From positions 62,001-126,000 of IMG/VR virus record IMGVR_UViG_3300007513_000004: 64,000 bases of DNA; one strand, given 5' to 3'. Of the stretch, positions 7,811 to 53,377 are shown one piece after another. Both the position numbers and the translations under genes were made by a program. Within the stretch, counting starts at the first letter, position 1. Each line of letters starts with the position of its first letter. The notes beneath the pieces are model-generated. The model saw only the letters and a program-made list of their open reading frames with translations, ran no database searches and was not told the DNA's origin.

Positions 7811-8191
7811 ATGAGCAGAAAGGTAGCTTGGATAAGCGACATAAAGACTGAAGAAAAACCATGGGGCAATGAGCGCTCGTGGTCTGGCGCTGGCTATATG
7901 CATGGAAAGATTATAAAGATTAACAAAGGTCATAGAACATCTCTAAAGAGATACAGAGTAAAAAGTGAGGCCTTCTATCTTCTCTCTGGCAAAATCGCTG
8001 TTATATATGGGGATGAAAAAACAACAGATATAAATTATATGCACCAAGGAATTCTTGAACCAGACCAGATATTATCTGTTCCATCCATGTGTCCATATAG
8101 ACTTGAAGCTTTGGAGGATTCTGTAATAATTGAAACATCAGATTATAGAGATTCATCTTATGAGGTCTTAGAAGATGACTACGATAGATAA
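7811..8191 (+). CDS. Cupin (mannose-6-phosphate isomerase C-terminal-like)
   Basis: EKPWGNE, GHRTSL...KSEAFYLLSG, RLEALEDSVIIETS...EDDYDR; the usual metal-binding His residues appear substituted. Confidence 0.75.
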   Translation: MSRKVAWISDIKTEEKPWGNERSWSGAGYMHGKIIKINKGHRTSLKRYRVKSEAFYLLSGKIAVIYGDEKTTDINYMHQGILEPDQILSVPSMCPYRLEALEDSVIIETSDYRDSSYEVLEDDYDR

Positions 8192-9278
8192 AATAAACAA
8201 ACTTTCAAGATGGCTATGTAAAAACGGATTAGAAAAAGATGCTATAAGTTTAAATAATCTTGTAAAAATAAGCAACTTAGGATCTTTTCATCCGGAACAT
8301 ATGCGCCACGCTTTCAATACTGTACAAAGAATGAATACGCCTAACCATAGTAATTTAGCTGACTCTTTTTACAAAATTATAAGATACTCTGATTTTTCTG
8401 AAAACGAATGGAAGCTGACAAGAGCAATTCAAGGATCAGAAGAATATAAAGAATGGAGTGAAAAAGTAGACCCTGGCGGCCTTGGTGATTTTAATTTAGA
8501 AAATAAAAAATACTGGAAAAAAATGCAAAATACTCCTGGCGTTTCAACTGTTGATATAAATCCAAGTGAACATATTGAAGTTACATTTGAATATCCCAAG
8601 GATGAAGCCGGAAGACATCCTGCTAGACGGCAGTTAAATGGGATTAAATTAAAACAAGATTTGTATTTCTCTTTCGAACTAACAGATGAGGCGAAAAAAG
8701 ATCACTCTATTGCCTTAGAGGGTGTTAAAAACTATCTAAGGTGGATTTTAGAAGTAGTTAAATATTCTGGAGAAACAAACAGAGTTTTGAAAGAAAGTAA
8801 CTCACCAACTTACATTAGAGCCTTAAAGTTTAATCCGGGAATAAATCTCAATTATCTTGCAGGTTCACTCTTTGATGAAAAAGACACTCTTAAGATTTAT
8901 TTTGCAAATGCTCATCCAAAGTTTCTTAGGCAATTTTATAATAATGTTATTTCTTTAAAAAATAATTTTTCTGGATTTACTACAAATGAGAATAGAGCCA
9001 GATTAGCTCGGGGCTTTGATTTAAGCAAGGTTCCAAACATTGGGAGTATGTCTTTTGGTCAAATTGTTGCACACAGAATGGCCTTTCATGCTTTGAATAG
9101 TTTTGAATATGTAAAAAGTATAGAAGATAACGAAGAAGGTAGAGCGCAATTTGTTGAATTTTTGGGGAATATCATGGATGTCTCTCAGCGAGAATTAATT
9201 ACTCATATGGATAATTACATAACGAAGAAAGATTCATCCGGTATCGAAAGAGTTTTGCAGGAATCAAAAATTATATAA
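8175..9278 (+). CDS. Tagged hypothetical protein
   Basis: N-terminal tag IDKINKLSRWLCKNGLEKDAISLNNLVKIS; 367-aa ORF overlapping the upstream stop. Confidence 0.7.
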   Translation: MTTIDKINKLSRWLCKNGLEKDAISLNNLVKISNLGSFHPEHMRHAFNTVQRMNTPNHSNLADSFYKIIRYSDFSENEWKLTRAIQGSEEYKEWSEKVDPGGLGDFNLENKKYWKKMQNTPGVSTVDINPSEHIEVTFEYPKDEAGRHPARRQLNGIKLKQDLYFSFELTDEAKKDHSIALEGVKNYLRWILEVVKYSGETNRVLKESNSPTYIRALKFNPGINLNYLAGSLFDEKDTLKIYFANAHPKFLRQFYNNVISLKNNFSGFTTNENRARLARGFDLSKVPNIGSMSFGQIVAHRMAFHALNSFEYVKSIEDNEEGRAQFVEFLGNIMDVSQRELITHMDNYITKKDSSGIERVLQESKII

Positions 9279-9323
9279 CTAAATTTTGTAGAATAAATAT
9301 ATACTAATTTTAATGTAAAAAAC

Positions 9324-9503
9324 ATGGAAGCATCAGATATCATATTATTATTCATCGGATCGGTAATAGCTATGCTTGGCATTATAACCGCCAGAGCAGC
9401 GGCCGAAAAGCGATTAGAATTTATTCGTATTCAAGTTAATGATCAAATACATCGTGATGAACTTCGCAAAAAGCATCTTGACTCATTATATGGCAGGGAT
9501 TAA
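9324..9503 (+). CDS. Small membrane protein (59 aa, not in ORF track)
   Basis: MEASDIILLFIGSVIAMLGIITARAAAEKRLE...; fills the gap and ends 1 nt before the next ATG. Confidence 0.6.
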   Translation: MEASDIILLFIGSVIAMLGIITARAAAEKRLEFIRIQVNDQIHRDELRKKHLDSLYGRD

Positions 9504-9504
9504 A

Positions 9505-10035
9505 ATGATTAAAACAGCAGGTAGTATGTTTGACAAAAAGTCTCCCGAAGACAGAGACGCTATGGAGGCTCTTCTTGAGCAGCTAGATAGAGAAGAGACC
9601 GAAGAGGATTTGACTCACCTTCAAGATACCATTAACAAAATTGAAGAGTCATTAAAAATAATTCGTGAAAGAAATTTCTCTGAAATGTCTGACGAAGAAT
9701 TGCAAGAAGTTGCAGAAGTTGTTGCCAACTTAGACAAGTTCAAGAACGAAATGAATATACTAACTGACCAATACCTGGGGCAAGGAGCCTTAGCGGAAAT
9801 AGACTTGCCGGATGATGTATATCAAGACATCAAGCAAGAATTCGGCCAACCTTCAGAGTATCTTGGATGGGGCGCACGAAAGCCCGGAGATCCAGAGTTT
9901 GGAATGTTTCCTCCAACAATTCCATTAGCCGAAGCATCTTTTATTAATGAATTAGCCAAGATTGCAAATGAATTAGACAATCGTGGTCTTGCGAAAGAAG
10001 CTGATGAGCTTGATAAAATTATATTAAATAAATAA
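9505..10035 (+). CDS. Acidic coiled-coil protein with C-terminal tag
   Basis: Start re-assigned to ATG 9505 (MIKTAG...), directly after the upstream stop; ends EASFINELAKIANELDNRGLAKEADELDKIILNK. Confidence 0.75.
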   Translation: MIKTAGSMFDKKSPEDRDAMEALLEQLDREETEEDLTHLQDTINKIEESLKIIRERNFSEMSDEELQEVAEVVANLDKFKNEMNILTDQYLGQGALAEIDLPDDVYQDIKQEFGQPSEYLGWGARKPGDPEFGMFPPTIPLAEASFINELAKIANELDNRGLAKEADELDKIILNK

Positions 10036-17500: not shown

Positions 17501-18514
17501 CTAGATATAATCTTGCAAATCTTCATAGCCTTGACCATAGCGTTTTTCCTCAAGCCTTTCTAGATCACCAGAGGTTCCTACTGGCTCTTCTTTTTCATAA
17601 GAGGAGGTATCGCCGTATAAGGGCACCTCTTCTGGAACGGAAAAGCTTTCGTCTTCAAAAAGCTGTCTTTGATCATCTGGAATAGAGTCTAAAAACTCTT
17701 CCCACTCTTCATAGATAGTGCTCATTGAACCACTTAAGTTTGGAAGGTCTGTTTTTATTTTATTTAATAAATCTTCAAACTCCAAATCTTCTAATGACTC
17801 AAGATTTGGTTCCCGGTACTCAACCCATTCAGAAAACTTTTTAGCGATTTCATCCCTTACCTCTAATACCTCACCTCTTCCTGGACGCTCTGTTTGACGA
17901 TTTAAATCTTCATTTTGATAATCCTGCAAAGAAATAAGATTATTATCAAAATCATGATGGCCTTCGGGAGTTAATCCCGATGCTGCCCACAAAACCTCTG
18001 AAGCTTCATCCATATTTAAGTCCTCCAAAGAAGCTAATCCGTCATCCATTAATTGCGCAAATTGCTTTTCTAGATCGGAAAAACCAAGCTCAAAGATAGA
18101 CTCTCTAAAGTCTGTATCGTAATTCCAATCAACAAAGTTTTCAGAATATTCTTCGGCAAGAGTGTTTAAAGCCTCTCTTTTTAGCTTTTCTTTTAATTCA
18201 TTTCCATCATCTAAGATTGAAATATTTGCTAGCTTTAGAACTTCATAGCTTTCTTTTCTAAAATTATTCTTTTTAAGAAAAGAACTAAGCTTTGTCAACC
18301 TAGCCTTTGGGCAGGAAGCTTCATTAACTCTTACTTCAAGATTGGGAGCCTCTTCATCTTTTAAGTCAAACTTGTCGGTTATATCCCTTGCCTCATCTTC
18401 TACAAAGTCTTCTAAAAAATCCTCTGCAAAATCCTCTGCAAAATCCTCCAAGTTATCTTCTAGTGCATTAATTTTTTCTAATTTATCATACATTTTGCAC
18501 TCATATTGCACCAT
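17501..18514 (-). CDS. Highly acidic protein with internal tag
   Basis: VNEASCPKARLTKLSSFLKKNNFRKESYEVLKLAN embedded in a D/E-rich sequence. Confidence 0.75.
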   Translation of the reverse strand: MVQYECKMYDKLEKINALEDNLEDFAEDFAEDFLEDFVEDEARDITDKFDLKDEEAPNLEVRVNEASCPKARLTKLSSFLKKNNFRKESYEVLKLANISILDDGNELKEKLKREALNTLAEEYSENFVDWNYDTDFRESIFELGFSDLEKQFAQLMDDGLASLEDLNMDEASEVLWAASGLTPEGHHDFDNNLISLQDYQNEDLNRQTERPGRGEVLEVRDEIAKKFSEWVEYREPNLESLEDLEFEDLLNKIKTDLPNLSGSMSTIYEEWEEFLDSIPDDQRQLFEDESFSVPEEVPLYGDTSSYEKEEPVGTSGDLERLEEKRYGQGYEDLQDYI

Positions 18515-19167
18515 TAATCGTCTAAAAGATCTTCAAATCGATTTACATATTTGTAAGAAGCATTTACGGTTAATTCTCCAGAAGTATTTCCTATATTTTC
18601 CAATGTTTGCGTTACGTTTACTCCGCCTCGGCCACTATATCGTCCGCCAACATCCTCTGGGTCTTCTGGATCCTCAGGGTCTAGAGGTTCGGGATCAGGG
18701 CATGGTGGGCAAGGGCCAGAATGATCTAGGTTGTTCACAAGAGCCTTTAGGCTGTCTAGCCCTTGATGCATAGAGAGAAGATTTGATGTAACTTTTTCAT
18801 GAATTTCTTCATCTTCAATTACCGGCTGCGGACCTGCCATGCCAACAAGGGGCGGCTCAGCAGCGGCACCCGGCCGATGCAGTGCCTGAAAAACCACCTC
18901 TCCCAAATCATCTATATCTTGTATGGCTGCCAATATAGCTGCAATATCACTAGTTGTTTCTGAAGATGTTCCACCTTTATCCGTTAAATCATCTGGCTCC
19001 GTACCTGAGTCTGGCTCCGTACCTGAGTCTGGCTCATCTGGAAATATTTTAGTCTCCTCACCTTCTGCTGTTTTGCTTATAATCATATCCACAGTATTTG
19101 CCTCTGCAGTCATGCCTGCTCTGTCAAGTTTATCTGCCAACCATATTAATTCTATTTTTGCATTCAT
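18514..19167 (-). CDS. Acidic, low-complexity tagged protein
   Basis: MNAKIELIWLADKLDRAGMTAEANTVDMIISKTA; EPDSGT repeats; PCPPCP. Confidence 0.75.
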   Translation of the reverse strand: MNAKIELIWLADKLDRAGMTAEANTVDMIISKTAEGEETKIFPDEPDSGTEPDSGTEPDDLTDKGGTSSETTSDIAAILAAIQDIDDLGEVVFQALHRPGAAAEPPLVGMAGPQPVIEDEEIHEKVTSNLLSMHQGLDSLKALVNNLDHSGPCPPCPDPEPLDPEDPEDPEDVGGRYSGRGGVNVTQTLENIGNTSGELTVNASYKYVNRFEDLLDD

Positions 19168-19188
19168 AATATTAATCCCTATATTGTT

Positions 19189-19725
19189 TTAATCTTTTTT
19201 ATTATCAACATGATCAGAGATAGCCTCTACATGCATGCCTAAAAATCCAAAATCATCTGAAAGATCAGAATCTAATTTTTGCGAAAGAACCCCAGCCTTA
19301 TATGCTATATTATGCGAAAGCTCAAGAGCTTTTTTCAACTCATCTTGTGTTGCAGATTTTTCTTTAAGAATTTCCTTTTCCAAACCAAGTAGTTCATCAG
19401 TTTCCCCAAGAGCCTCCAAGGCTATATCTATAGAGTCCTCATCTACTCCGTCATTCTTTACTTCTTCTCTAAGCATTTTAAAAGCCTTAACCGCTCCAGG
19501 ACATATGTCAAAATGCTCCGTACTTTCTCCATTAAACTCTACTTGCTCGTCTTCTTCTGGAGCATCTTCTTCTGGAGCATCTTCCTCTGGAGCGTCCCCA
19601 CTTACGCCTTCCAGGCCATTAACCAACTTTGTTAATGTAGCCATAATATCATCAACCTTTCCAGCTTCTTTGATCAAGCCTCTTTGGTCTAATTCATTTG
19701 CTAAATTTATAAGTTTTTCTAACAT
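19189..19725 (-). CDS. Acidic tagged protein
   Basis: MLEKLINLANELDQRGLIKEAGKVDDIM; EEDAP repeats; FDICPGA. Confidence 0.8.
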   Translation of the reverse strand: MLEKLINLANELDQRGLIKEAGKVDDIMATLTKLVNGLEGVSGDAPEEDAPEEDAPEEDEQVEFNGESTEHFDICPGAVKAFKMLREEVKNDGVDEDSIDIALEALGETDELLGLEKEILKEKSATQDELKKALELSHNIAYKAGVLSQKLDSDLSDDFGFLGMHVEAISDHVDNKKD

Positions 19726-21718: not shown

Positions 21719-21813
21719 ATAATAATTATAAATAAATTAACTTTTAAGAACTTAACAAATACTAACACTTTATGTCTAAATAATTAGCATGTAATAAAAA
21801 TATGTGATATTTA

Positions 21814-22275: not shown

Positions 22276-22872
22276 TTATTCTCCCATGGTGTCTTGAATC
22301 AACATATCAATATAAGAAGAGCTATATCCCCGCATACTTGTATTTAAAACCATTTCATCTGTAATGAAATAAAAGGTCGGCCAACTTGTGATGTTCCATC
22401 CGGATGTTGAACTGTAATCAATTATCGAACGATCACCCGCAAGAACCGGCTCTGAAATACCATAATCATCTGCCCAACCTTTACAGTCATCAACCGTAGG
22501 GGCAGTACCTTGGGGTGTTTCAATTAAGACCGTTAGATATGAAAGATTTTCATACGCATCTGCAACAGCTTGAACCTCAGAAGCCGCACTATTGCAAGGG
22601 CCGCACCACATTACGCTAAAATCCAAAACTATAGTATCTCCATAAAAATCATACAAAGATACGTCATTACCATTTTGATCTGTTAAAGTGAAATTGCATG
22701 GATGATCTCCCATGTTTTGCGAACAAGTCTCCCATGTCGCAAAAGAATATTCTTCACTACCATTTTCACCGTTATTTGCTGTATCATTTTCGCTTTCAAT
22801 ATTTTGCGTGCAAGCAGAACATGCCGTAAGCATTACTGAAATAAAAAATAAACATATTTTTTTACCAAACAT
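22276..22872 (-). CDS. TlpA/thioredoxin-like lipoprotein (paralogue of the 11724 ORF)
   Basis: LTAC lipobox; WETC...HPCNFTLTDQNG; WCGPC; SWPT. Confidence 0.88.
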   Translation of the reverse strand: MFGKKICLFFISVMLTACSACTQNIESENDTANNGENGSEEYSFATWETCSQNMGDHPCNFTLTDQNGNDVSLYDFYGDTIVLDFSVMWCGPCNSAASEVQAVADAYENLSYLTVLIETPQGTAPTVDDCKGWADDYGISEPVLAGDRSIIDYSSTSGWNITSWPTFYFITDEMVLNTSMRGYSSSYIDMLIQDTMGE

Positions 22873-24525: not shown

Positions 24526-25398
24526 CTAAGCATACACTTGATATCCAACCTCCACCAGAGTTCCATAATCTGGCAGAAAGTCAAGCTTAACCGTGTTTGT
24601 CTCCTCAATATATTTCCAACCACTTGTAACTTGACCATCTATATAAACTATTAATGAATCTAAAATGGGCGTTTCTTCACTAAGGATTATATAATCTCTT
24701 ATCTCTGTTAAGTATGAAGATTCTGAAAGCCACATAGACCAATCTTCTTCGCAAATATCTATAGAATTTTTTCCATAAAGAGATGAAAGCTCTTCATATT
24801 TATATCCCACATCATATACGTATCCGCAGCTGCTGTCTTCAACCTGAATAATTGTAACAACATCGTGCCTAACTTCATAAAACTCCTGTTGGAGCCATTC
24901 TTGAAAAACCGCAGCTGTGATGCCGCTTTGTTCATCTTCGTCGGAAATCAAAAATAAAAGAAAATCTGCTTCAGGGCGAGAAAACTCCATACCCTCTTCT
25001 GATGTCATAAACGAATATGTTGCAGCAAAACCCTCTTCATACCCGGCGGATGAAAGCAGGTATGGGGCCATCAACATGTCTATTGTTGTTGAGGACGAAT
25101 CATACGGACCAACATAACTTAGGTTGGTCGGATCCATTGTTATATATCCAAACTGATAATCTAAAGTGAGGCCTTCAATATCAGAGCGCAAAAGCTCCAT
25201 TCCGCCAGCTACTGCATCAAAGTTGTCATTCATTGAGCCGGAGGTGTCCAGCGATATTAAAACGTCTAGCTCCTCTACTGGATCTGCCTGTATGAATGAA
25301 TCTACAATTACACGAGTTTCTCTTTGTTCTACAATTGAAATGTCACTTTGACATCCCCCGACCAGCAACGCAAATAATGCTATGTAGAAAAACTTCAC
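24526..25398 (-). CDS. vWA-domain lipoprotein
   Basis: GGC lipobox; LDTSGSM MIDAS; ISDEDEQS; paralogous to the downstream gene. Confidence 0.85.
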   Translation of the reverse strand: MKFFYIALFALLVGGCQSDISIVEQRETRVIVDSFIQADPVEELDVLISLDTSGSMNDNFDAVAGGMELLRSDIEGLTLDYQFGYITMDPTNLSYVGPYDSSSTTIDMLMAPYLLSSAGYEEGFAATYSFMTSEEGMEFSRPEADFLLFLISDEDEQSGITAAVFQEWLQQEFYEVRHDVVTIIQVEDSSCGYVYDVGYKYEELSSLYGKNSIDICEEDWSMWLSESSYLTEIRDYIILSEETPILDSLIVYIDGQVTSGWKYIEETNTVKLDFLPDYGTLVEVGYQVYA

Positions 25399-25553: not shown

Positions 25554-25934
25554 TTATTTATTCTTTTTTCGTCTTTTTCTGCGTTTTCTTCTTCTATATT
25601 GAACAACGTCTATACCCTTTGCCATTATATCATCAAAAAGATGTCCTTGAAAATCTGTATCATATACCAGAAGTCCTTGTTTGTGAATTCTGCTTATTCC
25701 CTCATCTTGTACTAGTATTGTCAATATCTCCGCAATAGATGCAGAGCTTTGAACCTCAGCAGATTCGGCAAGAACCGTGAGAATCTCTGCAACGGATGCA
25801 GAGCTTTGAACCTCAGCAGATTCGGCAAGAACCGTGAGAATCTCTGCAACGGATGCAGAGCTTTGAACCTCAGTAGCTTGAGATACTACTGTTAATACTT
25901 CTGCAATAGCAGAAGAACTGTATATCTGCCCCAA
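25554..25934 (-). CDS. Protein with 19-aa tandem repeats and a poly-basic C-terminus
   Basis: (EVQSSASVAEILTVLAESA)n; ends YRRRKRRKRRKKNK. Confidence 0.65.
   Translation of the reverse strand: MGQIYSSSAIAEVLTVVSQATEVQSSASVAEILTVLAESAEVQSSASVAEILTVLAESAEVQSSASIAEILTILVQDEGISRIHKQGLLVYDTDFQGHLFDDIMAKGIDVVQYRRRKRRKRRKKNK
25741..25873. repeat. 57-bp coding tandem repeat (2.3 exact copies plus degenerate flanks)
   Basis: gcagagctttgaacctcagcagattcggcaagaaccgtgagaatctctgcaacggat at 25741 and 25798, partial at 25855. Confidence 0.9.
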
Positions 25935-27589: not shown

Positions 27590-30154
27590 CTATTGATGCA
27601 ACTCATACAGCCCAACGTCAATTATCACCGGCTCTCGCGAACCCGGCCTTTGCATTAAATTATTTGCATGCACATCCGACCAGTTAATTCCATTATCTTT
27701 TAATGTTTGAAGAAGAGCAAATAAACTTTCTGTTTCTGGCATATACTTTTCTGAAAACAAGAATCCTTCAGGAGATTCTGTGTAAATAGTTTGCTCTCTC
27801 TCCTTCTCTAATGCCTCTAATCTTCTGCGATTTCTACCTGCGCTATACCCCTGAGGATTATCTTCTAACATACCCTGTAATGCTCCAATAGATTGGTCTA
27901 CGCCTTCTGTTGAATAATATTTTGGAATAGGTCTTTCCGAAGCTTGGAAATATGAATTTATATTATTTTGAATTTCATCTGCAATTTGAGAAATGAAATC
28001 ATTTTCACCAAGCATAAATAAATTAGAAATATTTAGTAATTTATTATTTACAAAAGCAGATACCCCATCTGTTTGCACATCCCTAACAAGGATTGCCCTC
28101 TCCAGCTCTCTCTTTATACCCTCCTGCTCTGTAACAAAAGATCTATATATATCTTCTTCTTCCTCATTCTTTGATGTATTCCTTAAGGTTTCGGTGGCTG
28201 AATTGAAAGAGCGAGAGATTGCATCATGAATAAACTCTTCATTTTTAAACAAATCTCCTGATTCCCTATTTCTCTTTGTCCGCAAGACAGAATCCATATG
28301 ACCTCCGAAAGGTTCCAGGACTTCCATTATAATTATAGTGTCAAACATATCTTCAACTATTTTATAAATTTTTGGCAAATGCTTTCTTTGTTCTTCCGGA
28401 ACTTCAATTTCTGAAATCTTCTTCCAAATATCCGGCTCCATATTGCTGCTTGTAACCACCTTCGCTATTGCTCTATTGCCGTCATGCAGAACCTCATAGA
28501 TATTACCTTCTGCTGTTCTGGCCCCTTCGCCTCGTCGCTCTGCTTCTGTCCCTGCTATATACTTTATTATTTCCACTCCATTTCTTTTTAACACCTCTTC
28601 GCTTGGAAATCTGCGTCTCTCTACCCTGGTTTGCACCGGGATTGTAGCGTCTGGATCAACGGGGGTGGTTATCCCTGGCCCTATAGACATGGTTGAACCT
28701 GCCTGATCATCCGAATTAGTTGTCGCTAATTTTAAAATCTCTTCTAAAAAAGAAGCTTCTTGTGTAAAACCATTTTTCTTTAAATATTCATTTAAATTAT
28801 AAAATTTATTATCGATACTTGCAAAAGCGCTTGTCTGCTGAGGCATATCCACTCCCGGCGTCTGACCAGCATAAGGTATTCCGTCTTGCAAAAACCTATC
28901 AGCCTCTCTGTTTCTTCTCTTTGTAAGGCCGCGCATTTTTCTTCTTTTACCATCTGATCCGGTTGAAGTTTGAGGGCCATTTCGAATAGCCTTTTCTGCC
29001 CCCATATAATCACCCTCATTAAGGGGTCCTAATATATTATATTTTTTTGGACCACCCCTTCCGGTATTAAATGCAAAAGATGACATTGCATCAAACATAC
29101 TTTGGGTTATCGGAACTTTTATCTGACCTTTCCATGGAGACTCATGTTTTTTTACATCCTCTTTATAAAGACTCCAGGCCTGATCTCTTGTCATCTCCCC
29201 TCGCCCTTTTAGATACTTTGAAAACCTAGGCTTCTCTCTGGTTCTTACCAAATGTCCAATTCCAATTGTTGCTCGACCTTTAGCTTCCCCATATGAAGAA
29301 ATCGGCTCTCCCGTTGCATCATCATAAACATTTCCACGATAACTTTCTTTATCTGCCATCTCTTTCATTAAAGCCTCTGATGTTTCCATGCTACTTGCAG
29401 ACCCTATATTTGTAGCCCTTGATGCCTGAGCGGTGCCCGCCGGGGCAGGCAGAGGAGGCATGGCATCAGAGGGCAGAGGAGGCATGGCATCAGAGGGCAG
29501 AGGAGGCATAGCTCCAGAGCCTTGGCCCGGCGGGGTCGCTGCCCCTTGGCCTGCAGGCACCGCAGCAATGCTTTCCAGCATTATTAAAGTATTTTTATCA
29601 ACTATGCCAGTTGGCTCTATTTGATTGTTTGTCTGAAACTGAATAACAGCATTTTTTGTTTCTTCTCCATAATTTCCATTTACGTATCTTCCTGCTGAAA
29701 TATACCCATGTTTTACCAAAAGACTTTGAATCTTTGAGACAGGAGTGTTTCCAGCAACATCTTTGCTTCCAACCTGAAGTGTGCTAGAACCAGATCTGAT
29801 GGACGCCAGTTGATCCACCGGCGGAGGAAGATCTGGAGAAGAGACAGCTTGCGGTTCTGCCGACAAAGGCTCTGAGCGAGCCACCTCTTCGGCTCTCTGC
29901 AAGGCCTCCGCCTCTCCGCCTGCAGCAGCCGCAGCTTCTTCTGCAGCTTTTTGATCTTGCAAAGTCTTTTTAACCCACTCTAAATCGAACCCAAAAAACT
30001 CTGCATATGCCTCAGGGTCCGTTTCTGGATCAGGAATATCCGTAGATCCGCCACCGGTGCCAGAAATATTCCTAATAGCCCGCATCATCTCAGCTTCTTT
30101 TTCAAAACCCTTTTCTGTAAGAAACTTTTTTAATGTAAAAAGCCGATCATGCAC
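27590..30154 (-). CDS. Tagged multidomain protein: PG-binding domain + GH24 lysozyme + protein-kinase-like domain
   Basis: IQSLLVKHGY...G.YGEETKNAVIQFQ (PG_binding_1); KESYRGNVYDD...TIGIGH...FDAMSSFAFNTG...GLTKRRNREA (GH24); AIAKV...IIMEVL...DVHANNLM...IIDVG (kinase); tag at the N-terminus and between lysozyme and kinase. Confidence 0.85.
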   Translation of the reverse strand: MHDRLFTLKKFLTEKGFEKEAEMMRAIRNISGTGGGSTDIPDPETDPEAYAEFFGFDLEWVKKTLQDQKAAEEAAAAAGGEAEALQRAEEVARSEPLSAEPQAVSSPDLPPPVDQLASIRSGSSTLQVGSKDVAGNTPVSKIQSLLVKHGYISAGRYVNGNYGEETKNAVIQFQTNNQIEPTGIVDKNTLIMLESIAAVPAGQGAATPPGQGSGAMPPLPSDAMPPLPSDAMPPLPAPAGTAQASRATNIGSASSMETSEALMKEMADKESYRGNVYDDATGEPISSYGEAKGRATIGIGHLVRTREKPRFSKYLKGRGEMTRDQAWSLYKEDVKKHESPWKGQIKVPITQSMFDAMSSFAFNTGRGGPKKYNILGPLNEGDYMGAEKAIRNGPQTSTGSDGKRRKMRGLTKRRNREADRFLQDGIPYAGQTPGVDMPQQTSAFASIDNKFYNLNEYLKKNGFTQEASFLEEILKLATTNSDDQAGSTMSIGPGITTPVDPDATIPVQTRVERRRFPSEEVLKRNGVEIIKYIAGTEAERRGEGARTAEGNIYEVLHDGNRAIAKVVTSSNMEPDIWKKISEIEVPEEQRKHLPKIYKIVEDMFDTIIIMEVLEPFGGHMDSVLRTKRNRESGDLFKNEEFIHDAISRSFNSATETLRNTSKNEEEEDIYRSFVTEQEGIKRELERAILVRDVQTDGVSAFVNNKLLNISNLFMLGENDFISQIADEIQNNINSYFQASERPIPKYYSTEGVDQSIGALQGMLEDNPQGYSAGRNRRRLEALEKEREQTIYTESPEGFLFSEKYMPETESLFALLQTLKDNGINWSDVHANNLMQRPGSREPVIIDVGLYELHQ

Positions 30155-30170: not shown

Positions 30171-32627
30171 TTATTGATTTGAATCTTCTGGGTCGGGGTC
30201 AACGTCTGCATATGCCCCCTCCTCCTTGGATAAGAATTTAGTCATGTTTTGCTTTTCATCATATTCTGATGTCACAACGACCGTAGTAAGAGCAGTATCG
30301 GGCAAGGCAGCATCTGCGTCTTCCGCAGATGCGTAGACTACCAACCTGCAAGCCAAAAGCCTACCTGTCTCATCATATATGGAATCTGTGATTCTATGGT
30401 TATACTGAGCAAGTCCTGCTATAATCCTGTTGAACATACCGAATGTATGCTTGGTTTCGTGATCCGCAACTTCCTCTTCCCAAACTTCATGAGCAATCTC
30501 ATGCATTGTGCTATCAGTCTCTGCCTTGACGATTAAGACATCACTTGCTTCAAGGCCGGGAGAGGGAACAGAGCTCTCATCTTCATTTACTAATTTTATT
30601 TCAAAATATTGAGTGCCAGAGCCTTCTTCTTCGCCAACAGATACAATTCTTCCCAAATAACTCTGTGTATCTTGATCAAAAGACATTGTTCCAAAATCAA
30701 ACCCCTTTATAACAACAATTGACCTATCTACATAAGATATCATCTCAGCCTCTGTCAAAGGATGCGCCAATAGCCGGTTTGAATAAAATTTCTGACCATT
30801 GGGATCTGCATTATTGCATGTATGCACAGGGGTTCCCACCGGAGTCCCGCCTCCTGTCCAATGATTCATGTTTTCACTTAGATACCGAATAATCATGGCT
30901 TCAGCCATTGTGTTGGTATTTGGCGGAGCGGCTGTGCCGGTGTGTGGGTTGTAAATTGTATTAAATATATCGGCATTCCAAACTGCATCACTAATCTCTT
31001 GAGCGGCAGTGGCCGATATTTCTTCATATGTTACAGAATCAACCTGTATTGCATCTTCATCAATTGCATTGTTTGCAATTATCTGCGTTCTAATATTTGG
31101 CCTCCGAACAACAGAGTTACCATCTGGTAGGTAATCTTGGGTCCAAGTTACAAGAATATCATCAGGACTTGTTGGGCTTCCGCCTGTAACGCTGGTGCCC
31201 GCGCCCTCCCAGGTCTTGACCGAAATACGGGGAAATCTATTGGTTGTTCCGACCGAAACAGCTGCATCACTCACTCCCGCCCAGCCCTTGACTGTTATAG
31301 CGGGAAGCAATACGGTATTAACACTGTGGTCATATTCAGAACCGCCGGGAGCAGAAAAGACATATGCATCGGCACTCGTTGGGGTGGTAGCATTATTGGT
31401 TGTATTCCAAGCCTTAACGCTAATCTCAGGAACAGCAGATGTGTTGCCCACTGTGAACGAGGCATCACTATCTCCTCCCCAACCGCCAACACTAATCATA
31501 GGAAGAGAGTCGCCGCTTACTGCGTCCCCTCCAGCGCTGGTCTGAACATATGCATCTGCATGTGAAGCGTTTCCATCGCTGGTATTCCACGCTCTAACGC
31601 TAATTTCTGGAGCTTTGGAGGTATCGCCTATCGAAAATGCCGCATCGCCATCGCCTCCCCAGCCCTCAACCGTTACTGCCGGAAGACCAACACTGAGATT
31701 GGCTCCAGAGGTTCTAACCGTTACTGATCCTGTGTTATCATTCCAAGCTTCAACATTAATACTTGGCAGGCCTGAGCTTGAGCCAAGGGCTGTCTCGGCA
31801 TCAGTTGCTGAACTTCCATCTCTCCAGCCTCCAACACTAATCACGGGAAAGCTTGTGCTTGAACCAACAGAAAGAGATGGATTAAGTCCGCCCCAGTCTA
31901 CGACATTTGCACTAATCGTCCCCCCGCTTGCCGCATCAACATTCGGAAAGTGTGTTGTACTATCTGCCGAAAGTATAACACCAGTTGTATTTCCCGGATC
32001 AGCGTATGGTCCAAGATTATTCCAATCTACTACGTTTGCATCAACAGTTATTGAAGATACAACATCCACATCGGGAATTCCACCTGATCCAGAAACTCCG
32101 GATCCATCCCACTCTACAACATTAACATTTGGAACGCCATTAGTAGTTGTCGCAGTAACGTTATTGCCCTCCCATTGTACAACATTTGCATCTATAGCTC
32201 CAGAGAACGATGTAGATGAGACCATGACATCGCTTACAACAACATGGATGTATTCCAAGAAACCAGAGGTTGACTCTTCCATTCTTATTACATATCCCTC
32301 ATCTGCAGAATCGGGAGATGTGGTTGCAACACTGTTTGACCAAAATATACCCACCCCTGAGACCGAGGCGTTAAAATCATAAACGCCAGGTAACCCATCA
32401 GCCTGAAGCTCTCCCATGTCGCCCTCACAATCAGAGGGGCTAGAGACGTAATCCGCATTCGTAACCCACACATTAGAAGGGGCACCACCAGAGGTGAACT
32501 GCCAATACTCATCATTGTTAATACTATAAATACGAATCTTTGGAGCCAAACCAGACGTTGGAGTTCCACCGATAATCACTTCCATAGTAAAGTGTAGTGA
32601 TTCAGAATCTCTTATTTCATGTCTCAT
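30171..32627 (-). CDS. Putative virion structural/tail protein with P-x-I-x-V-x-x-W repeats
   Basis: About 12 repeats such as PSINVEAW, PAVTVEGW, PEISVRAW; EISDAVW and IAHEVWEE motifs. Confidence 0.6.
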   Translation of the reverse strand: MRHEIRDSESLHFTMEVIIGGTPTSGLAPKIRIYSINNDEYWQFTSGGAPSNVWVTNADYVSSPSDCEGDMGELQADGLPGVYDFNASVSGVGIFWSNSVATTSPDSADEGYVIRMEESTSGFLEYIHVVVSDVMVSSTSFSGAIDANVVQWEGNNVTATTTNGVPNVNVVEWDGSGVSGSGGIPDVDVVSSITVDANVVDWNNLGPYADPGNTTGVILSADSTTHFPNVDAASGGTISANVVDWGGLNPSLSVGSSTSFPVISVGGWRDGSSATDAETALGSSSGLPSINVEAWNDNTGSVTVRTSGANLSVGLPAVTVEGWGGDGDAAFSIGDTSKAPEISVRAWNTSDGNASHADAYVQTSAGGDAVSGDSLPMISVGGWGGDSDASFTVGNTSAVPEISVKAWNTTNNATTPTSADAYVFSAPGGSEYDHSVNTVLLPAITVKGWAGVSDAAVSVGTTNRFPRISVKTWEGAGTSVTGGSPTSPDDILVTWTQDYLPDGNSVVRRPNIRTQIIANNAIDEDAIQVDSVTYEEISATAAQEISDAVWNADIFNTIYNPHTGTAAPPNTNTMAEAMIIRYLSENMNHWTGGGTPVGTPVHTCNNADPNGQKFYSNRLLAHPLTEAEMISYVDRSIVVIKGFDFGTMSFDQDTQSYLGRIVSVGEEEGSGTQYFEIKLVNEDESSVPSPGLEASDVLIVKAETDSTMHEIAHEVWEEEVADHETKHTFGMFNRIIAGLAQYNHRITDSIYDETGRLLACRLVVYASAEDADAALPDTALTTVVVTSEYDEKQNMTKFLSKEEGAYADVDPDPEDSNQ

Positions 32628-33595: not shown

Positions 33596-33817
33596 ATGAA
33601 TAATGAATTAATTAAACTAGCAAATCATTTAGACAAAAAGGGCTTTCACAAAGAAGCTGATTTCTTAGATTCAATTATAAAAACCGCTTTAAATACCTCG
33701 TATCCAGAAGGCGGAGGAACCCGGTCTAATATACGCAAACTATGGGAACGAGTAAATGCTATCGAAAAACAGCTTGCTCTTTTAGATGAATCAACCCATA
33801 CACATCCGGATCCATAA
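33596..33817 (+). CDS. 73-aa tagged micro-protein
   Basis: MNNELIKLANHLDKKGFHKEADFLDSIIKTA plus ~42-aa cargo; cleanest tag copy. Confidence 0.8.
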   Translation: MNNELIKLANHLDKKGFHKEADFLDSIIKTALNTSYPEGGGTRSNIRKLWERVNAIEKQLALLDESTHTHPDP

Positions 33818-34677: not shown

Positions 34678-36015
34678 CTAACTAATCTGATACCCAGCAT
34701 TCTTCAGCGCCGAGTTATGGCACATAATTCCAGGCGTTGATCCAGACAGCTCTGTCCAATCCTCTATTTCTCCACTTTCATCTGCTCCAAAAATATATGT
34801 TTCCGGACCAGACATCGGCACCTCATTGGCTGACACTACAACGTGTGTGTGACCATCCAATGGTTCGCTTAACTCATAAAGGGCAGCATCTCCTCTGAAA
34901 TTATCCAAGGTTTTTATACGCTTTGCCGTTTTGCTTTTTGACAATTGCTCTGCATCCAAAAGATTCTGCCCCCGACCATGATAGGGTTTTTCGGTCATAG
35001 TGTTTAAAGAAACACCCCTATCTGCCCAAGGCTTATCCCAAGGCTTATCGTCAGAACTTATTTGGCTTACCATTTGACTTACCATTTCATCCATTCTTCC
35101 CTCTGGATGCGATCCGGGACGAGCTTGAACATCAGACGTTGGGTCAAGATCATCTTTTAGCTGCTGTACTTCATCGCCTATTCTTTCGTCAACCTCTGCA
35201 GCAATCTCCTCAGGATCTTTGGAGCTTCCGGAGTCAGCAGCGCCTTCTCCGAGGCCATACCAATCCCAATTAGCCTCACCCTCTTCGTCGTCATCCCACG
35301 AGGGTGCATCTACTTCTTTTGTTCTTTTCGCAACCAATGTAGCCTCAAGAACTGCCGAGCCTTCCCAGACACAGCCGGAGGCCACATCCCAACCATAATA
35401 CCACATACTACTGTGCCTAAAGCTATACTGATAAGGGCAGATCTCAATGCCAGAATATTTCATAGCAACTTTTGCCCAATCAATAGTCTTCCCCCAAGAA
35501 CTATCTGGAACCGAATACTCTCTCTCAAAGGCGACAAACTCTTGCTCATTCGTTATCATAAGCATTCTGCTTTCATCAACCTTGAAAGAATAAACATAAC
35601 CACCAATCCATTGTGGCATCTCATAAGTCAGCCAGCTAATCCACTCATTTCCGCATGCATACCAAATGCCCGAAGGTTTTGGTCCCTTTTGTTGCGCAGG
35701 AAAGTTTGGAATTCTAGTCAACTCTTCTGCCGCCATAGTTATTCTGTTATTTTGATTATCCCCTATTAACTCTGTAAGCTGTGTATAATTTGCCTCTTTA
35801 TCCTTTTTTTCAGGAATATTTACCTTCAGATCTTGAGTCTCTTCTTTCAGCTTCGCTAGTTCTTCCGGAATCCTTCTTGCCATTCCTAATTTATCAAAGT
35901 GGTATGCCAACTTATCGCAGACATCAGCCTCTCTAATCATTCCTTTTTGATCAAACTTATTAGACAGATCTATCAACTCATTGATATTTAATTTTGAAAT
36001 GGCAGCTTTATCCAT
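34678..36015 (-). CDS. Tagged two-domain protein (KPxGIW...IDW...WDVASG domain plus C-terminal phage domain)
   Basis: Tag NELIDLSNKFDQKGMIREADVCDKLA; acidic linker between two globular domains. Confidence 0.75.
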   Translation of the reverse strand: MDKAAISKLNINELIDLSNKFDQKGMIREADVCDKLAYHFDKLGMARRIPEELAKLKEETQDLKVNIPEKKDKEANYTQLTELIGDNQNNRITMAAEELTRIPNFPAQQKGPKPSGIWYACGNEWISWLTYEMPQWIGGYVYSFKVDESRMLMITNEQEFVAFEREYSVPDSSWGKTIDWAKVAMKYSGIEICPYQYSFRHSSMWYYGWDVASGCVWEGSAVLEATLVAKRTKEVDAPSWDDDEEGEANWDWYGLGEGAADSGSSKDPEEIAAEVDERIGDEVQQLKDDLDPTSDVQARPGSHPEGRMDEMVSQMVSQISSDDKPWDKPWADRGVSLNTMTEKPYHGRGQNLLDAEQLSKSKTAKRIKTLDNFRGDAALYELSEPLDGHTHVVVSANEVPMSGPETYIFGADESGEIEDWTELSGSTPGIMCHNSALKNAGYQIS

Positions 36016-47970: not shown

Positions 47971-48497
47971 TCCTCATATATAGATCCTTCGAAATCGTAT
48001 CTGGCCTCTTTCCCATTAAAGAACCCTATTCTCGCATCCAACTCTACTCCGTCAACTTCGTTGATTCCCACGCCAAGTAATTCATTCGAATAAACAGGGC
48101 TGGTTTCCTCTGTGGTTGACACTGTTATATGAGGAATGCTGTTTGAAGAGGCTACCCCAGCAACCATAACGGCCTGGCCTCGATCATCTTCATTGTATCC
48201 AATAATTTTTAACTTAACAATCTTTCCATCTATTGGCAAAGCTAGAACCTCTTCTTCCGATGGTTTAAACTTTATAGTCATATGGTGCATAAAATGCTTA
48301 GAATGAAGCTCCTTCTGAACTACGGTTCCCCACCAATTTTCCAACATTTCTTTACCAGATGGTGTTAAAAATGCCGCAGTATATAAGGCTTTCTTTTTCT
48401 TTTTTGCATATTTTATAATTTCTTCTACAGACTTTAAATATGCAGAGCCACCTTCTTTTTCTATTTTATCTTTTAATTCCTCTAATGCTTTAATCAT
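47967..48497 (-). CDS. 2H phosphoesterase (cyclic phosphodiesterase-like), with divergent tag
   Basis: Two HxT motifs, HHMTIKF and PHITVS; N-terminal MIKALEELKDKIEKEGG...EEIIKYA. Confidence 0.8.
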   Translation of the reverse strand: MIKALEELKDKIEKEGGSAYLKSVEEIIKYAKKKKKALYTAAFLTPSGKEMLENWWGTVVQKELHSKHFMHHMTIKFKPSEEEVLALPIDGKIVKLKIIGYNEDDRGQAVMVAGVASSNSIPHITVSTTEETSPVYSNELLGVGINEVDGVELDARIGFFNGKEARYDFEGSIYED

Positions 48498-50848
48498 ATT
48501 ATCTCCATATTATCTAAATAATCTGCCTCTTCAATAAGGCCTCTCTCATCTAACTCGTTTGCTACTGTAATTAATTTTTTTAATATACTCACTTTATCAT
48601 TCGACGCCTTTACTCGAAGCGATTCTTTGGGTTTAGCGCTAATGCTTACTCTATAAATAGTTACTTTTGAATGAAGATCTGGACCATAAACGTTTTCTAG
48701 TATATTATTTACATCATTTATATATTTCAAATTATCGTCATAAAATTTTATTGAACTTACAGAATCTTGCTGTGCAATTTGTCCAATTATATGCGCCTTA
48801 TATTTTCCACTAGAAATATTGGTTGGCTTTGTAAATATAGATATAGGAAGCTTAAGGCCAACGCTTGTGAGTCGATCCATTATACCCTCTGCCATACCTT
48901 CTCTTGTTTCTCTTGCTGTCAATATAACGGCGTTATCACTATGAGTCTTGTATGTGTTTAAAATCTCTTCATTCGGTATGGTCCCCAATGTTTTAGGGCT
49001 TTGATAAAACACAGCGTCTCCAGCTACAACCGCTTGCTCGGGAACATACTTGCCCCTTAAATCAAATGCTTTCAAATTTTTTGATGAAAAATATTTTTTC
49101 AACATCGGAATTCCTATTGGGCTTCCGCTTTCGTCGGAAAGAACAAACACTACCTGCCTATCCTTTCCAAGCATAGGTAAATCCACAATCCTCTTTATAA
49201 GCCTAAGGTTTCCCACCTCTTGCCTATATGAGTCTGCCAACCCTTGTATTTCTTTTCCCTTTTTATCTTTTTTGATTAATTCTACATGATTTTCATTAGC
49301 TCTTTGCACAAAAGAAATAGCCTTATGAAACATATTTGGAAGGTCCATGTCTACAGAGGTTGCATCACCCTCCTCGTTGGTCTCCACTATAGTGTGCCAC
49401 TCAGGAGTCCAGAACAGTGTGTCATCCATATCAAAAATATACACTTCTCCACTAAGCGGTGGAATAGGTATATTTAGTGGATTTTCTATTTTATCACCAT
49501 TCAAAGAATGCGCTTTTTTTATATGATTATTTAAAAAATTAGTCTCAGAAAATTTTCCAAGTTTGCTTAATTCTAAAGAAAGCTTAATCAATTTTTCTGT
49601 TATATCAGAACTGGCCTCAGATATTCCTTCAGTATTCTCTGGATTTTTTTCAAAATAAGCATCAACCTCAGCGCTCCTAATGGCTTCGCCCATCTCTGGC
49701 CCAGGCTTCATACCTCCCGCTATAAGATCTCGCGCAGATACAACCGGTGGGGCAGATGCAAAGTTTATAAACTTATTAAAGTCCTGCCCTATAGCCCCTC
49801 CAAAGTCCATTATTGCCTCGTTGCTCATAATTGTCTTTGAAGCTTTTTTCATTCGTATCAACTCTCTCTTTAGTCCGATTAAACTTTCGGCATTTAATTT
49901 AGTTAAATTTAAGAGAAATTTTACAGAATCTTTTATATCATTTCCATATTTCTTTTGAAACAAAACATTAGCTACATCGCTACTATTGTTTTCTTGAAGA
50001 ATCGTAGCAAGTTGAACAGCAACATTTCTGCTTGAAGATATTGCTTTAGAAACTTTTAATCCTGGCAATATTTGTGGAAACAAATCAAAATCTTTTAACA
50101 TATTAATATAATGAGATGGAGACTTTGATGTTTTAATTCCTTTTTTTACTTCATCCTGAATTCTTTCATCAGAAACCGCTGCTTCACTATTCTCTGTAAG
50201 TGAATTATTACTTCTAATTGCATTAGCAGTTTCTTCATCAACCTCTCCGCCCATTCTTCCTGCAAATCTAAAGGCTCTAAGGATTCTTAAACGATCTTCT
50301 CCGAATCTTTCATCAGGATCTCCAACGGTTCTTATAACCTCATTCTTAATGTCGTCTATTCCACCAACATAGTCAACGACCTCTCCCGCAACTCCATCCT
50401 CCCTCTCTTTGCGTGTTGGAATTCTATAAAACAAAGCATTTATGGTGAGATCTCGACGCATTGCGTCATCTTTTATTGATAACGGATTCTCTTTTGTGGA
50501 AAGGGTGGCCTCACCACCCATCCTGGTTCCGCGCTCTACTCGATATGGAGCAAATTCATACTCGTTTCCATCATAAGCTATCATCCTTGCTACTGCGAAT
50601 GACTTTTCGCCCTGAACCCCTATGCGCTTAACGTACGGGCTTAAAATTCTAATGACATCTTCCGGAGTTGCGTTTGTTGCTATATCATAATCCTTTGGAG
50701 ACTTTCCAAGAATGGTGTCCCTTACTGCTCCTCCAGCAATGTACATTTCAAATCCAGCAGAAGCCATTACATCCCTTAGTTGATAAAGGCTTTCAGGAAT
50801 TTCCATAGGAATTTCCATTATAATTGGATTATCAAAAGCTTCAGACAT
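48494..50848 (-). CDS. cca: Class II tRNA nucleotidyltransferase (CCA/poly(A) polymerase family) fused via a tag to an RNA-repair-type HAD phosphatase
   Basis: GGAVRD..LG..PKDYDIAT, RRDLTINAL, EDRLRILRAFRF, ERI..E; then FDMDDTLF, ILTAR, K, FYDD (HAD); internal and C-terminal tags. Confidence 0.85.
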   Translation of the reverse strand: MSEAFDNPIIMEIPMEIPESLYQLRDVMASAGFEMYIAGGAVRDTILGKSPKDYDIATNATPEDVIRILSPYVKRIGVQGEKSFAVARMIAYDGNEYEFAPYRVERGTRMGGEATLSTKENPLSIKDDAMRRDLTINALFYRIPTRKEREDGVAGEVVDYVGGIDDIKNEVIRTVGDPDERFGEDRLRILRAFRFAGRMGGEVDEETANAIRSNNSLTENSEAAVSDERIQDEVKKGIKTSKSPSHYINMLKDFDLFPQILPGLKVSKAISSSRNVAVQLATILQENNSSDVANVLFQKKYGNDIKDSVKFLLNLTKLNAESLIGLKRELIRMKKASKTIMSNEAIMDFGGAIGQDFNKFINFASAPPVVSARDLIAGGMKPGPEMGEAIRSAEVDAYFEKNPENTEGISEASSDITEKLIKLSLELSKLGKFSETNFLNNHIKKAHSLNGDKIENPLNIPIPPLSGEVYIFDMDDTLFWTPEWHTIVETNEEGDATSVDMDLPNMFHKAISFVQRANENHVELIKKDKKGKEIQGLADSYRQEVGNLRLIKRIVDLPMLGKDRQVVFVLSDESGSPIGIPMLKKYFSSKNLKAFDLRGKYVPEQAVVAGDAVFYQSPKTLGTIPNEEILNTYKTHSDNAVILTARETREGMAEGIMDRLTSVGLKLPISIFTKPTNISSGKYKAHIIGQIAQQDSVSSIKFYDDNLKYINDVNNILENVYGPDLHSKVTIYRVSISAKPKESLRVKASNDKVSILKKLITVANELDERGLIEEADYLDNMEII

Positions 50849-53268: not shown

Positions 53269-53287
53269 CTCCTTTTGCCATAAAATA

Positions 53288-53350
53288 ATACCAACGAGAT
53301 TAATACTTGTCTATAAAAATTTACAAGTTTTTATTAAATCTCGTTGGTAT
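53288..53350. repeat. Long inverted repeat/hairpin upstream of topA
   Basis: Perfect 14-bp arms ataccaacgagatt (53288-53301) / aatctcgttggtat (53337-53350), with inner pairing acttgt/acaagt. Confidence 0.8.
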
Positions 53351-53377
53351 ATATTTGTATAAGTATATGATTCTAGC

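Follow-up and report, generated by a model that had tools for sequence, protein, structure and literature searches.

An apparently natural fusion of tagged lysozyme and tagged kinase-like genes in an uncultured marine jumbo phage

The stretch of DNA analyzed here (the window, 64,000 nucleotides) comprises bases 62001-126000 of IMG/VR virus record IMGVR_UViG_3300007513_000004 (G000), a linear record of 223,402 bp that is ~67% complete according to CheckV. On its minus strand, at 27590..30154, lies a single, uninterrupted open reading frame (ORF) of 854 amino acids that starts at a GTG, has GAGG ahead of it, and ends in a stop codon at 27590-27592. It encodes, in this order, a short segment that we call the tag, a peptidoglycan-binding (PGB) domain, a GH24 lysozyme domain, a second tag, and a kinase-like domain. 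Sequence comparisons indicate that this ORF is a natural fusion of two neighboring late genes, tag-PGB-muralytic and tag-kinase, of an uncultured marine jumbo phage. The tag system was not found in the domain libraries and papers searched and is of more interest than the fusion itself. At about even odds, we favor the view that the tag docks its cargo on a partner shared within the virion or its assembly, with the fusion protein being delivered at infection. Because the record encodes PhoH, ribonucleotide reductase, DnaB- and SF-type helicases, fibre-like proteins, nine tRNAs, and a tmRNA, we consider it a fragment of a jumbo phage genome. The ORF is present in marine and seawater metagenomes of several studies. 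Structure and alignment work used the database representative P0001 in place of the window translation; the two differ at one residue, 459 within tag 2, which is K in the window and M in P0001.

The N-terminal half of the protein has two recognizable domains, both encoded, like all features of the ORF, on the minus strand. Residues 138-192 (29579..29743) match PG_binding_1 (PF01471) with a Pfam E-value of 5.3e-13 (49.4 bits against a cut-off of 23), and the GH24 lysozyme domain occupies residues 263-425 (28880..29368), of which 286-417 match Pfam Phage_lysozyme/GH24 (PF00959) with an E-value of 2e-19 (70.7 bits against a cut-off of 22.3). Lysozymes in the PDB match this half with a best E-value of 4e-12 and the PHROGs agree: their matches are annotated as endolysin, with a weak one to "internal virion lysozyme motif". 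Inspection of motifs in the GH24 domain identified catalytic-type residues E270, D279, and T296 in the spacing of T4-type lysozymes, with D279 nine residues after E270 and T296 inside the sequence TIGIGH. We take these three residues to be the equivalents of E11, D20, and T26 of T4 lysozyme. A Pro-rich linker (residues 214-240; 29435..29515), in which AMPPLPSD occurs three times, precedes the lysozyme domain and is exchanged for other sequence in a divergent strain (run X7).

For the C-terminal half of this protein, neither Pfam (including Pkinase, PF00069) nor PHROGs returned a significant match, and more distant members of its family do match Pfam Pkinase directly. An exhaustive HMMER search identified 196 family representatives at E <= 1e-3, each standing for a cluster at 50% identity. 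When a profile of 82 family sequences was compared to the PDB, CK2alpha was matched with an E-value of 1.6e-9 and more than 1000 chains were matched at E < 1. These matches fall in two blocks, one covering the G-loop and the VAIK lysine, the other alphaE, the catalytic loop, and DFG. An AF2 model of the kinase half built with a multiple sequence alignment had a pLDDT of 90.9 and a pTM of 0.79, while the single-sequence prediction (pLDDT 38) was of no use. Foldseek followed by VIA-align returned protein kinases only (1000 of 1000 re-aligned chains), with Z-scores up to 10.8 for CDKL1 and DAPK1, and the structural alignments run from the N-lobe of the target to DFG and end there.

The domain thus delimited by profile, AF2, and structure matches spans residues 516-854 (27593..28609). 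It has a degenerate G-loop with E549-G550, a VAIK-type lysine (K565), a hinge of sequence MEVLEP (610-615), a catalytic loop DVHANN (827-832; 27659-27676), and the sequence IIDVG (844-848; 27611-27625), in which DVG occupies 846-848. Between the hinge and alphaE lies a helical insert of ~185 amino acids (about 617-800). Across the 82 family sequences, K565, D827, N832, and D846 are invariant or nearly so. The protein stops 8 residues past D846, the Asp equivalent to that of DFG, and it therefore has no activation segment, APE motif, or alphaF-alphaI. Profiles and predicted structure together indicate that the C-terminal domain is a real but atypical kinase core of the eukaryotic protein kinase (ePK) fold, and judged by their residues both enzymatic halves look catalytically competent. 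A preliminary description of this DNA had proposed that a PG-binding/GH24 lysozyme and a kinase lie in one ORF with a full tag exactly between them, preceded by FAS and ending in KLA; Pfam, the PDB profile search, AF2, and Foldseek confirm the pair of enzymes, and the tag is found at residues 445-477 with both borders as described.

In the linker between tag 2 and the kinase (residues 478-515; 28610..28723), which is predicted to be disordered, we observed a short motif (for example ORF residues 496-506; P0006-P0020) that nearly all family members have kept, D/E-x-T-[VA]-[VI]-x-P (also rendered as D/E-x-T-[VI]-x-x-P), whose Thr is conserved. This segment could dock as a strand on the N-lobe; alternatively, it could be a pseudosubstrate or a site of autophosphorylation.

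Tag 1 (residues 1-32; 30059..30154; MHDRLFTLKKFLTEKGFEKEAEMMRAIRNISG) is of a subtype that we call B. Tag 2 (residues 445-477; 28724..28822; ASIDNKFYNLNEYLKKNGFTQEASFLEEILKLA) aligns with the N-terminal tags of stand-alone kinases of the same family. It is preceded by SAFAS (442-446) and ends with ILKLA (473-477). In the AF2 model it forms two helices (residues 441-460 and 464-483) with a pLDDT of about 87-91, followed by disorder at 484-510 and then the kinase from ~516. The tag is thus predicted to be an autonomous two-helix hairpin of about 30 residues.

We next asked how widely the tag occurs. A local tag hidden Markov model (HMM) found 28 copies in the ORFs of the 223-kb genome and 0 in reversed and 0 in shuffled controls, so that the tag of the preliminary description is real and well above chance. 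At least 27 otherwise unrelated proteins of the record have it in common. Its consensus is (M)xxELIKLAxxLDxxGLxKEADxLDxxIKK, and a second flavour, xKLxxLxxFLxKNGFxKEA..., includes both copies of this ORF, the stand-alone kinases, and several larger proteins. Most copies begin at the initiator Met; others, in the record and in IMG/VR contigs, are at the extreme C-terminus or internal. Among 14 proteins with the type-A tag, the tags are 61% identical, compared with 10% for the next 29 residues, and 667 synonymous codon differences fall within the tags themselves. This pattern marks the tag as a conserved module attached to unrelated proteins, for which recent duplication does not account. Across IMG/VR, a search with two narrow peptide patterns alone returned 37 tag loci on 28 contigs of 11-317 kb, including at least 7 C-terminal cases.

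Searches for a known counterpart of the tag gave nothing credible in Pfam (E up to 10) or PHROGs (E up to 1), and its profile found just two chance matches of 11-13 residues, at E about 1, among PDB sequences. A tblastn search of 50,697 GenBank phage records with a 46-amino-acid tag protein had no match at E <= 1, a comparison with low statistical power for a 30-residue motif. A word-indexed protein search returned 29 proteins, all metagenomic; literal searches of the literature for tag peptides gave irrelevant matches only; and an ESM Atlas search with a tag protein gave uninformative scores around 0.65.

The internal tag is kept under purifying selection. Between the record and the related locus L017, the nonsynonymous divergence (pN) is 0.07 for the kinase, 0.18 for tag 2, 0.24 for GH24, and 0.25-0.51 for the linkers; dS is saturated in this comparison, so that of the per-region measures pN alone is usable. 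Since tag 2 has the lower value of 0.18 compared to 0.24, it is at least as constrained as the lysozyme.

We then turned to the origin of the fusion. Most kinase-family representatives are stand-alone proteins of 320-420 amino acids that have the same C-terminal end as this protein, and many start with a tag: the tag HMM was positive in 35 of 152 representatives and in 0 reversed controls, with many more visible by eye. On a 348-kb TARA scaffold (L002), a fibre-like gene is followed by a 300-amino-acid tag-Phage_lysozyme2-like gene, a gap of 14 nt, a 390-amino-acid tag-kinase gene, and genes for a 289-amino-acid lipoprotein and a 541-amino-acid Ig/VWA lipoprotein, an order that matches the neighborhood of the window ORF. 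In L019, a 401-amino-acid PGB-Phage_lysozyme2-like gene lies 13 nt from a 386-amino-acid tag-kinase gene. Both genes are tagged in L002, while the muralytic gene of L019 has at its start only a degenerate, tag-like segment. The muralytic proteins of both split loci resemble PF18013 "Phage tail lysozyme" below threshold, and in L018 the kinase comes directly after a fibre-like gene. The separately tagged genes that the preliminary description had proposed to look for in homologues thus exist, and its larger proposal, a precursor that would be packaged and then cut, is supported in part, in that the protein is built from two separately tagged units.

The separate genes, 13-14 nt apart in some relatives, are also what would be expected if the ORF in the window were an assembly or read-through artefact joining two genes. 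However, fused forms were found not only in the record but also in L017/P0002, P0004, P0003, and P0032, so that divergent fused ORFs occur in several samples and studies, and they are monophyletic. An identical stretch of 9.2 kb is present on a second IMG/VR contig, and a 4242-nt contig from a ~95%-identical strain of another study spans the lysozyme, tag 2, and the kinase, with differences consisting of substitutions and one compensating indel pair 7 nt apart. Furthermore, in three divergent lineages the junction is free of stop codons and the tag does not begin with a Met. The independent divergent copies refute the artefact, to which we attach practically no credence.

The kinase part of L017/P0002, which is from another sample, is 84% identical to that of this ORF, and that of P0003 is 64% identical. 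In both P0003 and P0032 an SLT transglycosylase is present in place of GH24, with the PGB domain, the internal tag, and the kinase retained. In a tree of the kinase, the fused forms make up one clade with 98/98 support, arguing for one fusion event and a later swap of the muralytic domain. Collectively, these comparisons indicate that the fusion arose once and has been maintained under selection. A further protein, P0066, is an independent fusion in reverse order, with the kinase first, then PG_binding_1, then a PF11860 muramidase. The swapped partners envisaged in the preliminary description are therefore found, as SLT in P0003 and P0032 and as kinase-PGB-muramidase in P0066. The kinase is thus linked repeatedly, and in both domain orders, to four hydrolase families (GH24, SLT, PF18013-like, and PF11860). 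By Rosetta-stone logic, such a recurrent tie to cell-wall hydrolases argues that both work together, and the two halves probably cooperate already when they are encoded separately.

The same link could be explained if the kinase-like domain phosphorylated a small molecule or envelope component, such as a sugar, a lipid, or a muropeptide. In line with this idea, language-model (ESM Atlas) neighbors of the kinase include APH, Kdo, and YrbL-type families, and the domain lacks an activation segment and the peptide-binding elements of the C-lobe. However, the minimal effector protein kinases OspG, NleH, and HopBF1 also lack these elements. By sequence as well as by structure, Ser/Thr protein kinases are the best matches, distant family members match Pfam Pkinase directly, and the periplasm, where the cell wall is located, has no ATP. 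We therefore regard a small-molecule substrate as very improbable.

The junction itself raises a different possibility. The linker at residues 426-444 (28823..28879) contains an in-frame ATG (M437; codon 28844-28846) with the Shine-Dalgarno (SD)-like sequence GGGAG five nt upstream, 8 codons before the tag. Initiation at this site would give a separate tag-kinase beside the full-length fusion, without proteolysis, and the product would be like the stand-alone tag-kinases; L017 also has an ATG just upstream of its tag, with a weaker AAGG. These SD-like motifs are weak, their position is not conserved, and they may be leftovers of the sequence that once lay between the two ancestral genes; in P0003 and P0032 no Met is present at this place. 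An internal start is accordingly improbable in our view.

How might the two tags act? We consider docking to be the leading interpretation. In this model, the tag would bring diverse cargo to one shared partner, most plausibly a component of the virion interior or of its assembly, and the fusion would be a small "polyvalent protein" delivered at infection, whose PGB-lysozyme half would open the host cell wall and whose kinase half would phosphorylate host proteins. That the tag is not bound to one position in the protein is what would be expected of a docking peptide and speaks against an export signal. The cargo set, consisting of lysozyme, kinase, sub-threshold matches to ArdC-N and LysM, a CCA/poly(A)-polymerase family protein, and twelve small variable ORFs, is typical of injected proteins, and the fibre genes around the ORF count in favor of delivery. 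Nothing in the sequence requires that the fusion be cut afterwards.

Several points weigh against docking in the virion. The virion location of the tagged proteins is one that we infer by analogy, and the tagged genes lie amid genes for exported proteins and lipoproteins instead of being grouped with clear head genes. Neither a head module nor a prohead protease was found in the ~67%-complete record, the tag is without similarity to any known targeting sequence, and an enzyme of the CCA/poly(A)-polymerase type would not readily be expected in a virion. Finally, if one tag sufficed to load the protein, the second would be expected to decay; it has been retained, which argues for an additional or different role, be it structural for the kinase, in heterodimerization, or in processing. 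Tag 2 may thus persist as the mark of a processing site, by pairing with tag 1, or because the kinase needs it.

Processing is central to the reading of the ORF as a true polyprotein, which would be loaded via its tag or tags; cleavage at the internal tag or beside it would then release a free virion lysozyme and a free kinase. Consistent with this scenario, each half keeps its own tag, the internal one under purifying selection, and other fusions of the family, P0082 (kinase-tag-kinase) and P0032 (SLT-tag-kinase), also keep a tag-like segment between their modules. The linkers on either side of the tag are predicted to be disordered, which would leave them open to a protease, and processed head-packaged proteins have precedents in the internal proteins (IPs) and Alt of T4 (PMC9026906) and in DdrB of P1 (PMC5512222). 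By contrast, we found no conserved cleavage motif at the borders of the tag. The sequence FAS was tried as a cleavage site and rejected as unsupported: A-S is also found inside N-terminal tags (MAS-I, NAS-L), and the (F/E)-A-S that precedes internal tags therefore looks like a helix N-cap. The ORF has no MPTase domain; a Pfam scan detected no peptidase family and there is no HExxH motif within its 854 residues. Proteases of the T4 gp21 (PF03420) and HK97 (PF04586) types are absent from the ~67%-complete record. The sole nearby protease weighed for this role, Trypsin_2, bears a signal peptide, and some polyvalent proteins are delivered uncut (PMC5512222). These proteins also weaken the premise of the preliminary description that a single enzyme of this makeup would make little sense: single phage proteins that combine lysozyme, C-lobe-less kinase, and ArdC-N domains are a published theme (PMC5512222). 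Taken together, we think it unlikely that the protein is cut in this way.

The protein might act outside the virion altogether, as the endolysin of the phage, or an accessory one, whose kinase-like domain and tags regulate or localize it inside the infected cell, the tag being a general oligomerization or localization module. PGB plus GH24 is a classic architecture of Gram-negative endolysins, as the annotations of the PHROG matches reflect, and the 854-residue protein (~94 kDa at full length) has no signal peptide and no transmembrane (TM) or SAR-type segment (maximum Kyte-Doolittle 19-mer 1.06), as is the case for holin-dependent endolysins. An amphipathic hairpin of 30 residues is a typical dimerization element, and some of the tagged enzymes are unexpected in virions. 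On the other hand, the endolysin of this phage could be another PGB protein (485 amino acids; 42555-44012), whose 402-amino-acid counterpart in L002 has weak sub-threshold matches of M15/VanY type. The split muralytic orthologues, with their sub-threshold resemblance to PF18013, follow a fibre-like gene, and the conservation of all kinase catalytic residues speaks in favor of a real enzyme and counts against a domain that only regulates. We judge a non-virion endolysin unlikely. The absence of signal peptide and TM segment also bears on the periplasmic and cytoplasmic substrates that had been assigned to the two halves, an assignment that does not stand as an observation.

The docking interpretation gains from comparison with phage polyvalent proteins, which were described as carrying several effector domains per protein and as being encoded among late genes (Iyer, Burroughs, Anand, de Souza, and Aravind 2017, PMC5512222). 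Their repertoire includes lysozyme, ArdC-N, and a kinase clade that lacks the C-terminal subdomain and keeps the active-site residues, and they were proposed to enter with the DNA, breach the cell wall, and modify host proteins (PMC5512222). Similarly, the ORF in the window combines lysozyme and kinase effectors in one phage polypeptide with fibre-like genes around it, and this multidomain protein is a variant of the published theme. Unlike many polyvalent proteins, it has two effector domains only and lacks the MPTase (zincin) autoprocessing domain, which is frequent but not obligatory. Set against the published description of the kinase clade, our kinase has likewise lost the C-terminal subdomain with its active-site residues intact, and the conserved Glu N-terminal to strand 2 corresponds to E549-G550, invariant or nearly so, just before the NIYEV strand. 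However, the Gln signature of the clade is missing, the final N-lobe strand reading IIIMEVLEP with M610 and E611 invariant. For the clade, an insert between the conserved His and Asp of phosphotransfer is described; in our kinase the loop reads W-S-D827-V-H829-A-N-N and the large insert lies before alphaE. A term search of PMC5512222 found no description of a modular hairpin tag before each unit.

The second comparison is to the capsid-targeting sequence (CTS) of T4, present on the variable internal proteins IPI-III and on Alt (PMC9026906). In both systems a constant short tag is joined to hypervariable small cargo and to a host-modifying enzyme (PMC9026906). The CTS differs in having about 10 residues, in being N-terminal, and in being removed by gp21 at L/I-x-E, whereas the tag described here is a ~30-residue hairpin that can also be C-terminal or internal. 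The tag has no sequence similarity to the T4 CTS and no gp21-type protease was found in the ~67%-complete record. Like the virion-associated peptidoglycan hydrolases T7 gp16, T4 gp5, phiKZ gp181, and PF18013, our protein has a muralytic domain encoded among structural genes and no signal peptide; unlike T7 gp16, T4 gp5, and phiKZ gp181, it has a kinase attached, and the muralytic domain is the interchangeable part while the kinase is the conserved partner.

The minimal effector kinases OspG/NleH and HopBF1 provide a third point of reference. They too have kept the Lys, the catalytic Asp and Asn, and the Asp of DFG and lost the activation segment. An OspG family cluster is found among the language-model neighbors of our kinase. 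They are, however, bacterial secretion-system effectors of about 200 amino acids without the 185-amino-acid helical insert, and the resemblance is one of architecture. As for the tag, the coat-binding helix-turn-helix of P22 scaffolding protein and the cargo-loading peptides of encapsulins are short terminal modules, portable like a tag, that suffice to load arbitrary cargo into a shell of the HK97 fold. The analogy is one of function only, since no sequence similarity of the tag to any solved structure was found. Finally, T7 gp0.7, with which the preliminary description had compared the kinase half, is an early-expressed, non-packaged, stand-alone protein. The likeness holds as a concept, both being phage protein-kinase-like enzymes presumed to phosphorylate host proteins, and gp0.7 is a precedent named in PMC5512222. 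It does not extend to sequence: no GenBank phage, T7 included, matches our kinase at E <= 0.01.

Extending the docking idea to all tagged proteins, the hairpin might be the universal address label of a clade of marine jumbo phages, loading dozens of effectors into the virion or another assembly, with tag-X-tag-Y fusions later separated at the tags. Subtype A would then be carried by small hypervariable proteins and subtype B by large enzymes (muralytic, kinase). Such a label would be a new modular system for loading and processing cargo, apart from the T4 CTS and the MPTase-processed polyvalent proteins, and we offer it as a tentative and still doubtful proposal.

The other tagged genes are spread over the window and the rest of the record. 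In the window they include a 445-amino-acid protein with a sub-threshold match to the N-terminal (anti-restriction) domain of ArdC (34678..36015, minus strand), a 784-amino-acid protein of the poly(A)-polymerase/CCA-adding family with its tag at the extreme C-terminus (48494..50848, minus strand), and a small ORF of 73 amino acids with a subtype A tag (33596..33817, plus strand). Three consecutive genes at 17501..19725 (minus strand) encode proteins of 178 and 217 amino acids with N-terminal tags and one of 337 amino acids with an internal tag at residues 67-100, and two genes at 8175..10035 (plus strand) encode a 367-amino-acid protein with an N-terminal tag and a 198-amino-acid protein with a C-terminal one. 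The record also encodes a tagged protein of 494 amino acids with a sub-threshold LysM match. Just upstream of the window, at record positions 53049-61743 (loci L008/L009), we observed an array of twelve consecutive minus-strand ORFs of 46-388 amino acids. Each begins with a type-A tag; the proteins are otherwise mutually unrelated, with pI values both acidic and basic, and the array resembles the hyperplastic internal-protein loci of T-even phages. Another X-tag-Y arrangement is seen in a 340-amino-acid protein (record positions 21605-22627, minus strand; L007:1605-2627), in which a very basic N-terminus of 60 residues (KKRTTRGKGKK...) is followed by HSFAS and an internal tag.

The ORF has an 818-amino-acid repeat-rich fibre-like protein as its upstream neighbor (30171..32627, minus strand), which is syntenic in L002, L017, and L018; in all three the muralytic/kinase unit follows the fibre-like gene. 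At about residues 700-800 this protein has an invariant block, TMHE-AHEVWEE-V-DH...TFGMFNRI, that contains HExxH and is kept in four relatives. We considered whether its HEIAH could mark a zincin and hence a candidate processing protease. This is probably not the case: Pfam and PHROGs were negative, and the Atlas neighbors were tail, head-fibre, and crAss muzzle-type proteins. On the other side of the ORF are genes for two predicted lipoproteins with lipobox-like N-termini (290 amino acids, 24526-25398; 539 amino acids, 22898-24517; both minus strand), which are conserved beside the kinase gene in all related loci. HYDIN/VesB-like Ig domains are present in the larger one, whose L002 relative shows a weak match to VWA as well. 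Nearby are two signal-bearing redoxin/AhpC-like genes (22276-22872 and 11724-12476) and a 126-amino-acid ORF (25554-25934, minus strand) in which SSASVAEILTVLAESAEVQ is repeated in tandem three times and the tail, RRRKRRKRRKKNK, is poly-basic; this ORF is absent from the syntenic position of L002. Directly upstream of the three consecutive tagged genes, the window encodes a Trypsin_2 serine protease of 262 amino acids with a clear N-terminal signal peptide (19765-20553, minus strand) and an Rce1-like CAAX membrane protease of 166 amino acids (20592-21092, minus strand); Trypsin_2 has counterparts in L002 and L018, and the Rce1-like protein has one in L018.

A second, unrelated kinase is encoded outside the window, a 639-amino-acid PrkA/YeaG-type "serine kinase"/AAA protein (record positions 133545-135464, minus strand; L010:7545-9464) with 35% identity to genes found in Thermus phages and in huge uncultured phages. 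We tried this gene as a taxonomic marker and rejected it: the cultured phages matched were unrelated Thermus phages alone, indicative of an auxiliary gene. An 824-amino-acid protein (record positions 141964-144438, minus strand; L010:15964-18438) combines a glycosyltransferase-like region with a weak match to PhuZ-type tubulin (phrog_4733, E 6e-6). Record positions 161584-217583 (minus strand) hold a run of giant ORFs of 1533, 3319, 1108, 2738, 1777, 1080, 1207, and 1970 amino acids, all without a tag. The tmRNA (1878-2227, minus strand) encodes the tag peptide ANNNYYYEPVALAA, and the nine tRNAs lie at record positions 10790-44629.

If the kinase is delivered with the virion, this protein would be a clear phage case of a packaged host-takeover kinase coupled to an entry lysozyme. 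Its family, with about 200 representatives and none in cultured phages, would add a minimal kinase core in which the C-lobe is replaced by an upstream insert, and its link to four unrelated hydrolase families, irrespective of order, predicts a partnership, functional or physical, that can be tested. The tag would allow the proteins that an uncultured phage clade injects or co-assembles to be listed from sequence, including its hypervariable and probably anti-defence small proteins, and it could serve as a handle for loading foreign cargo into large capsids.

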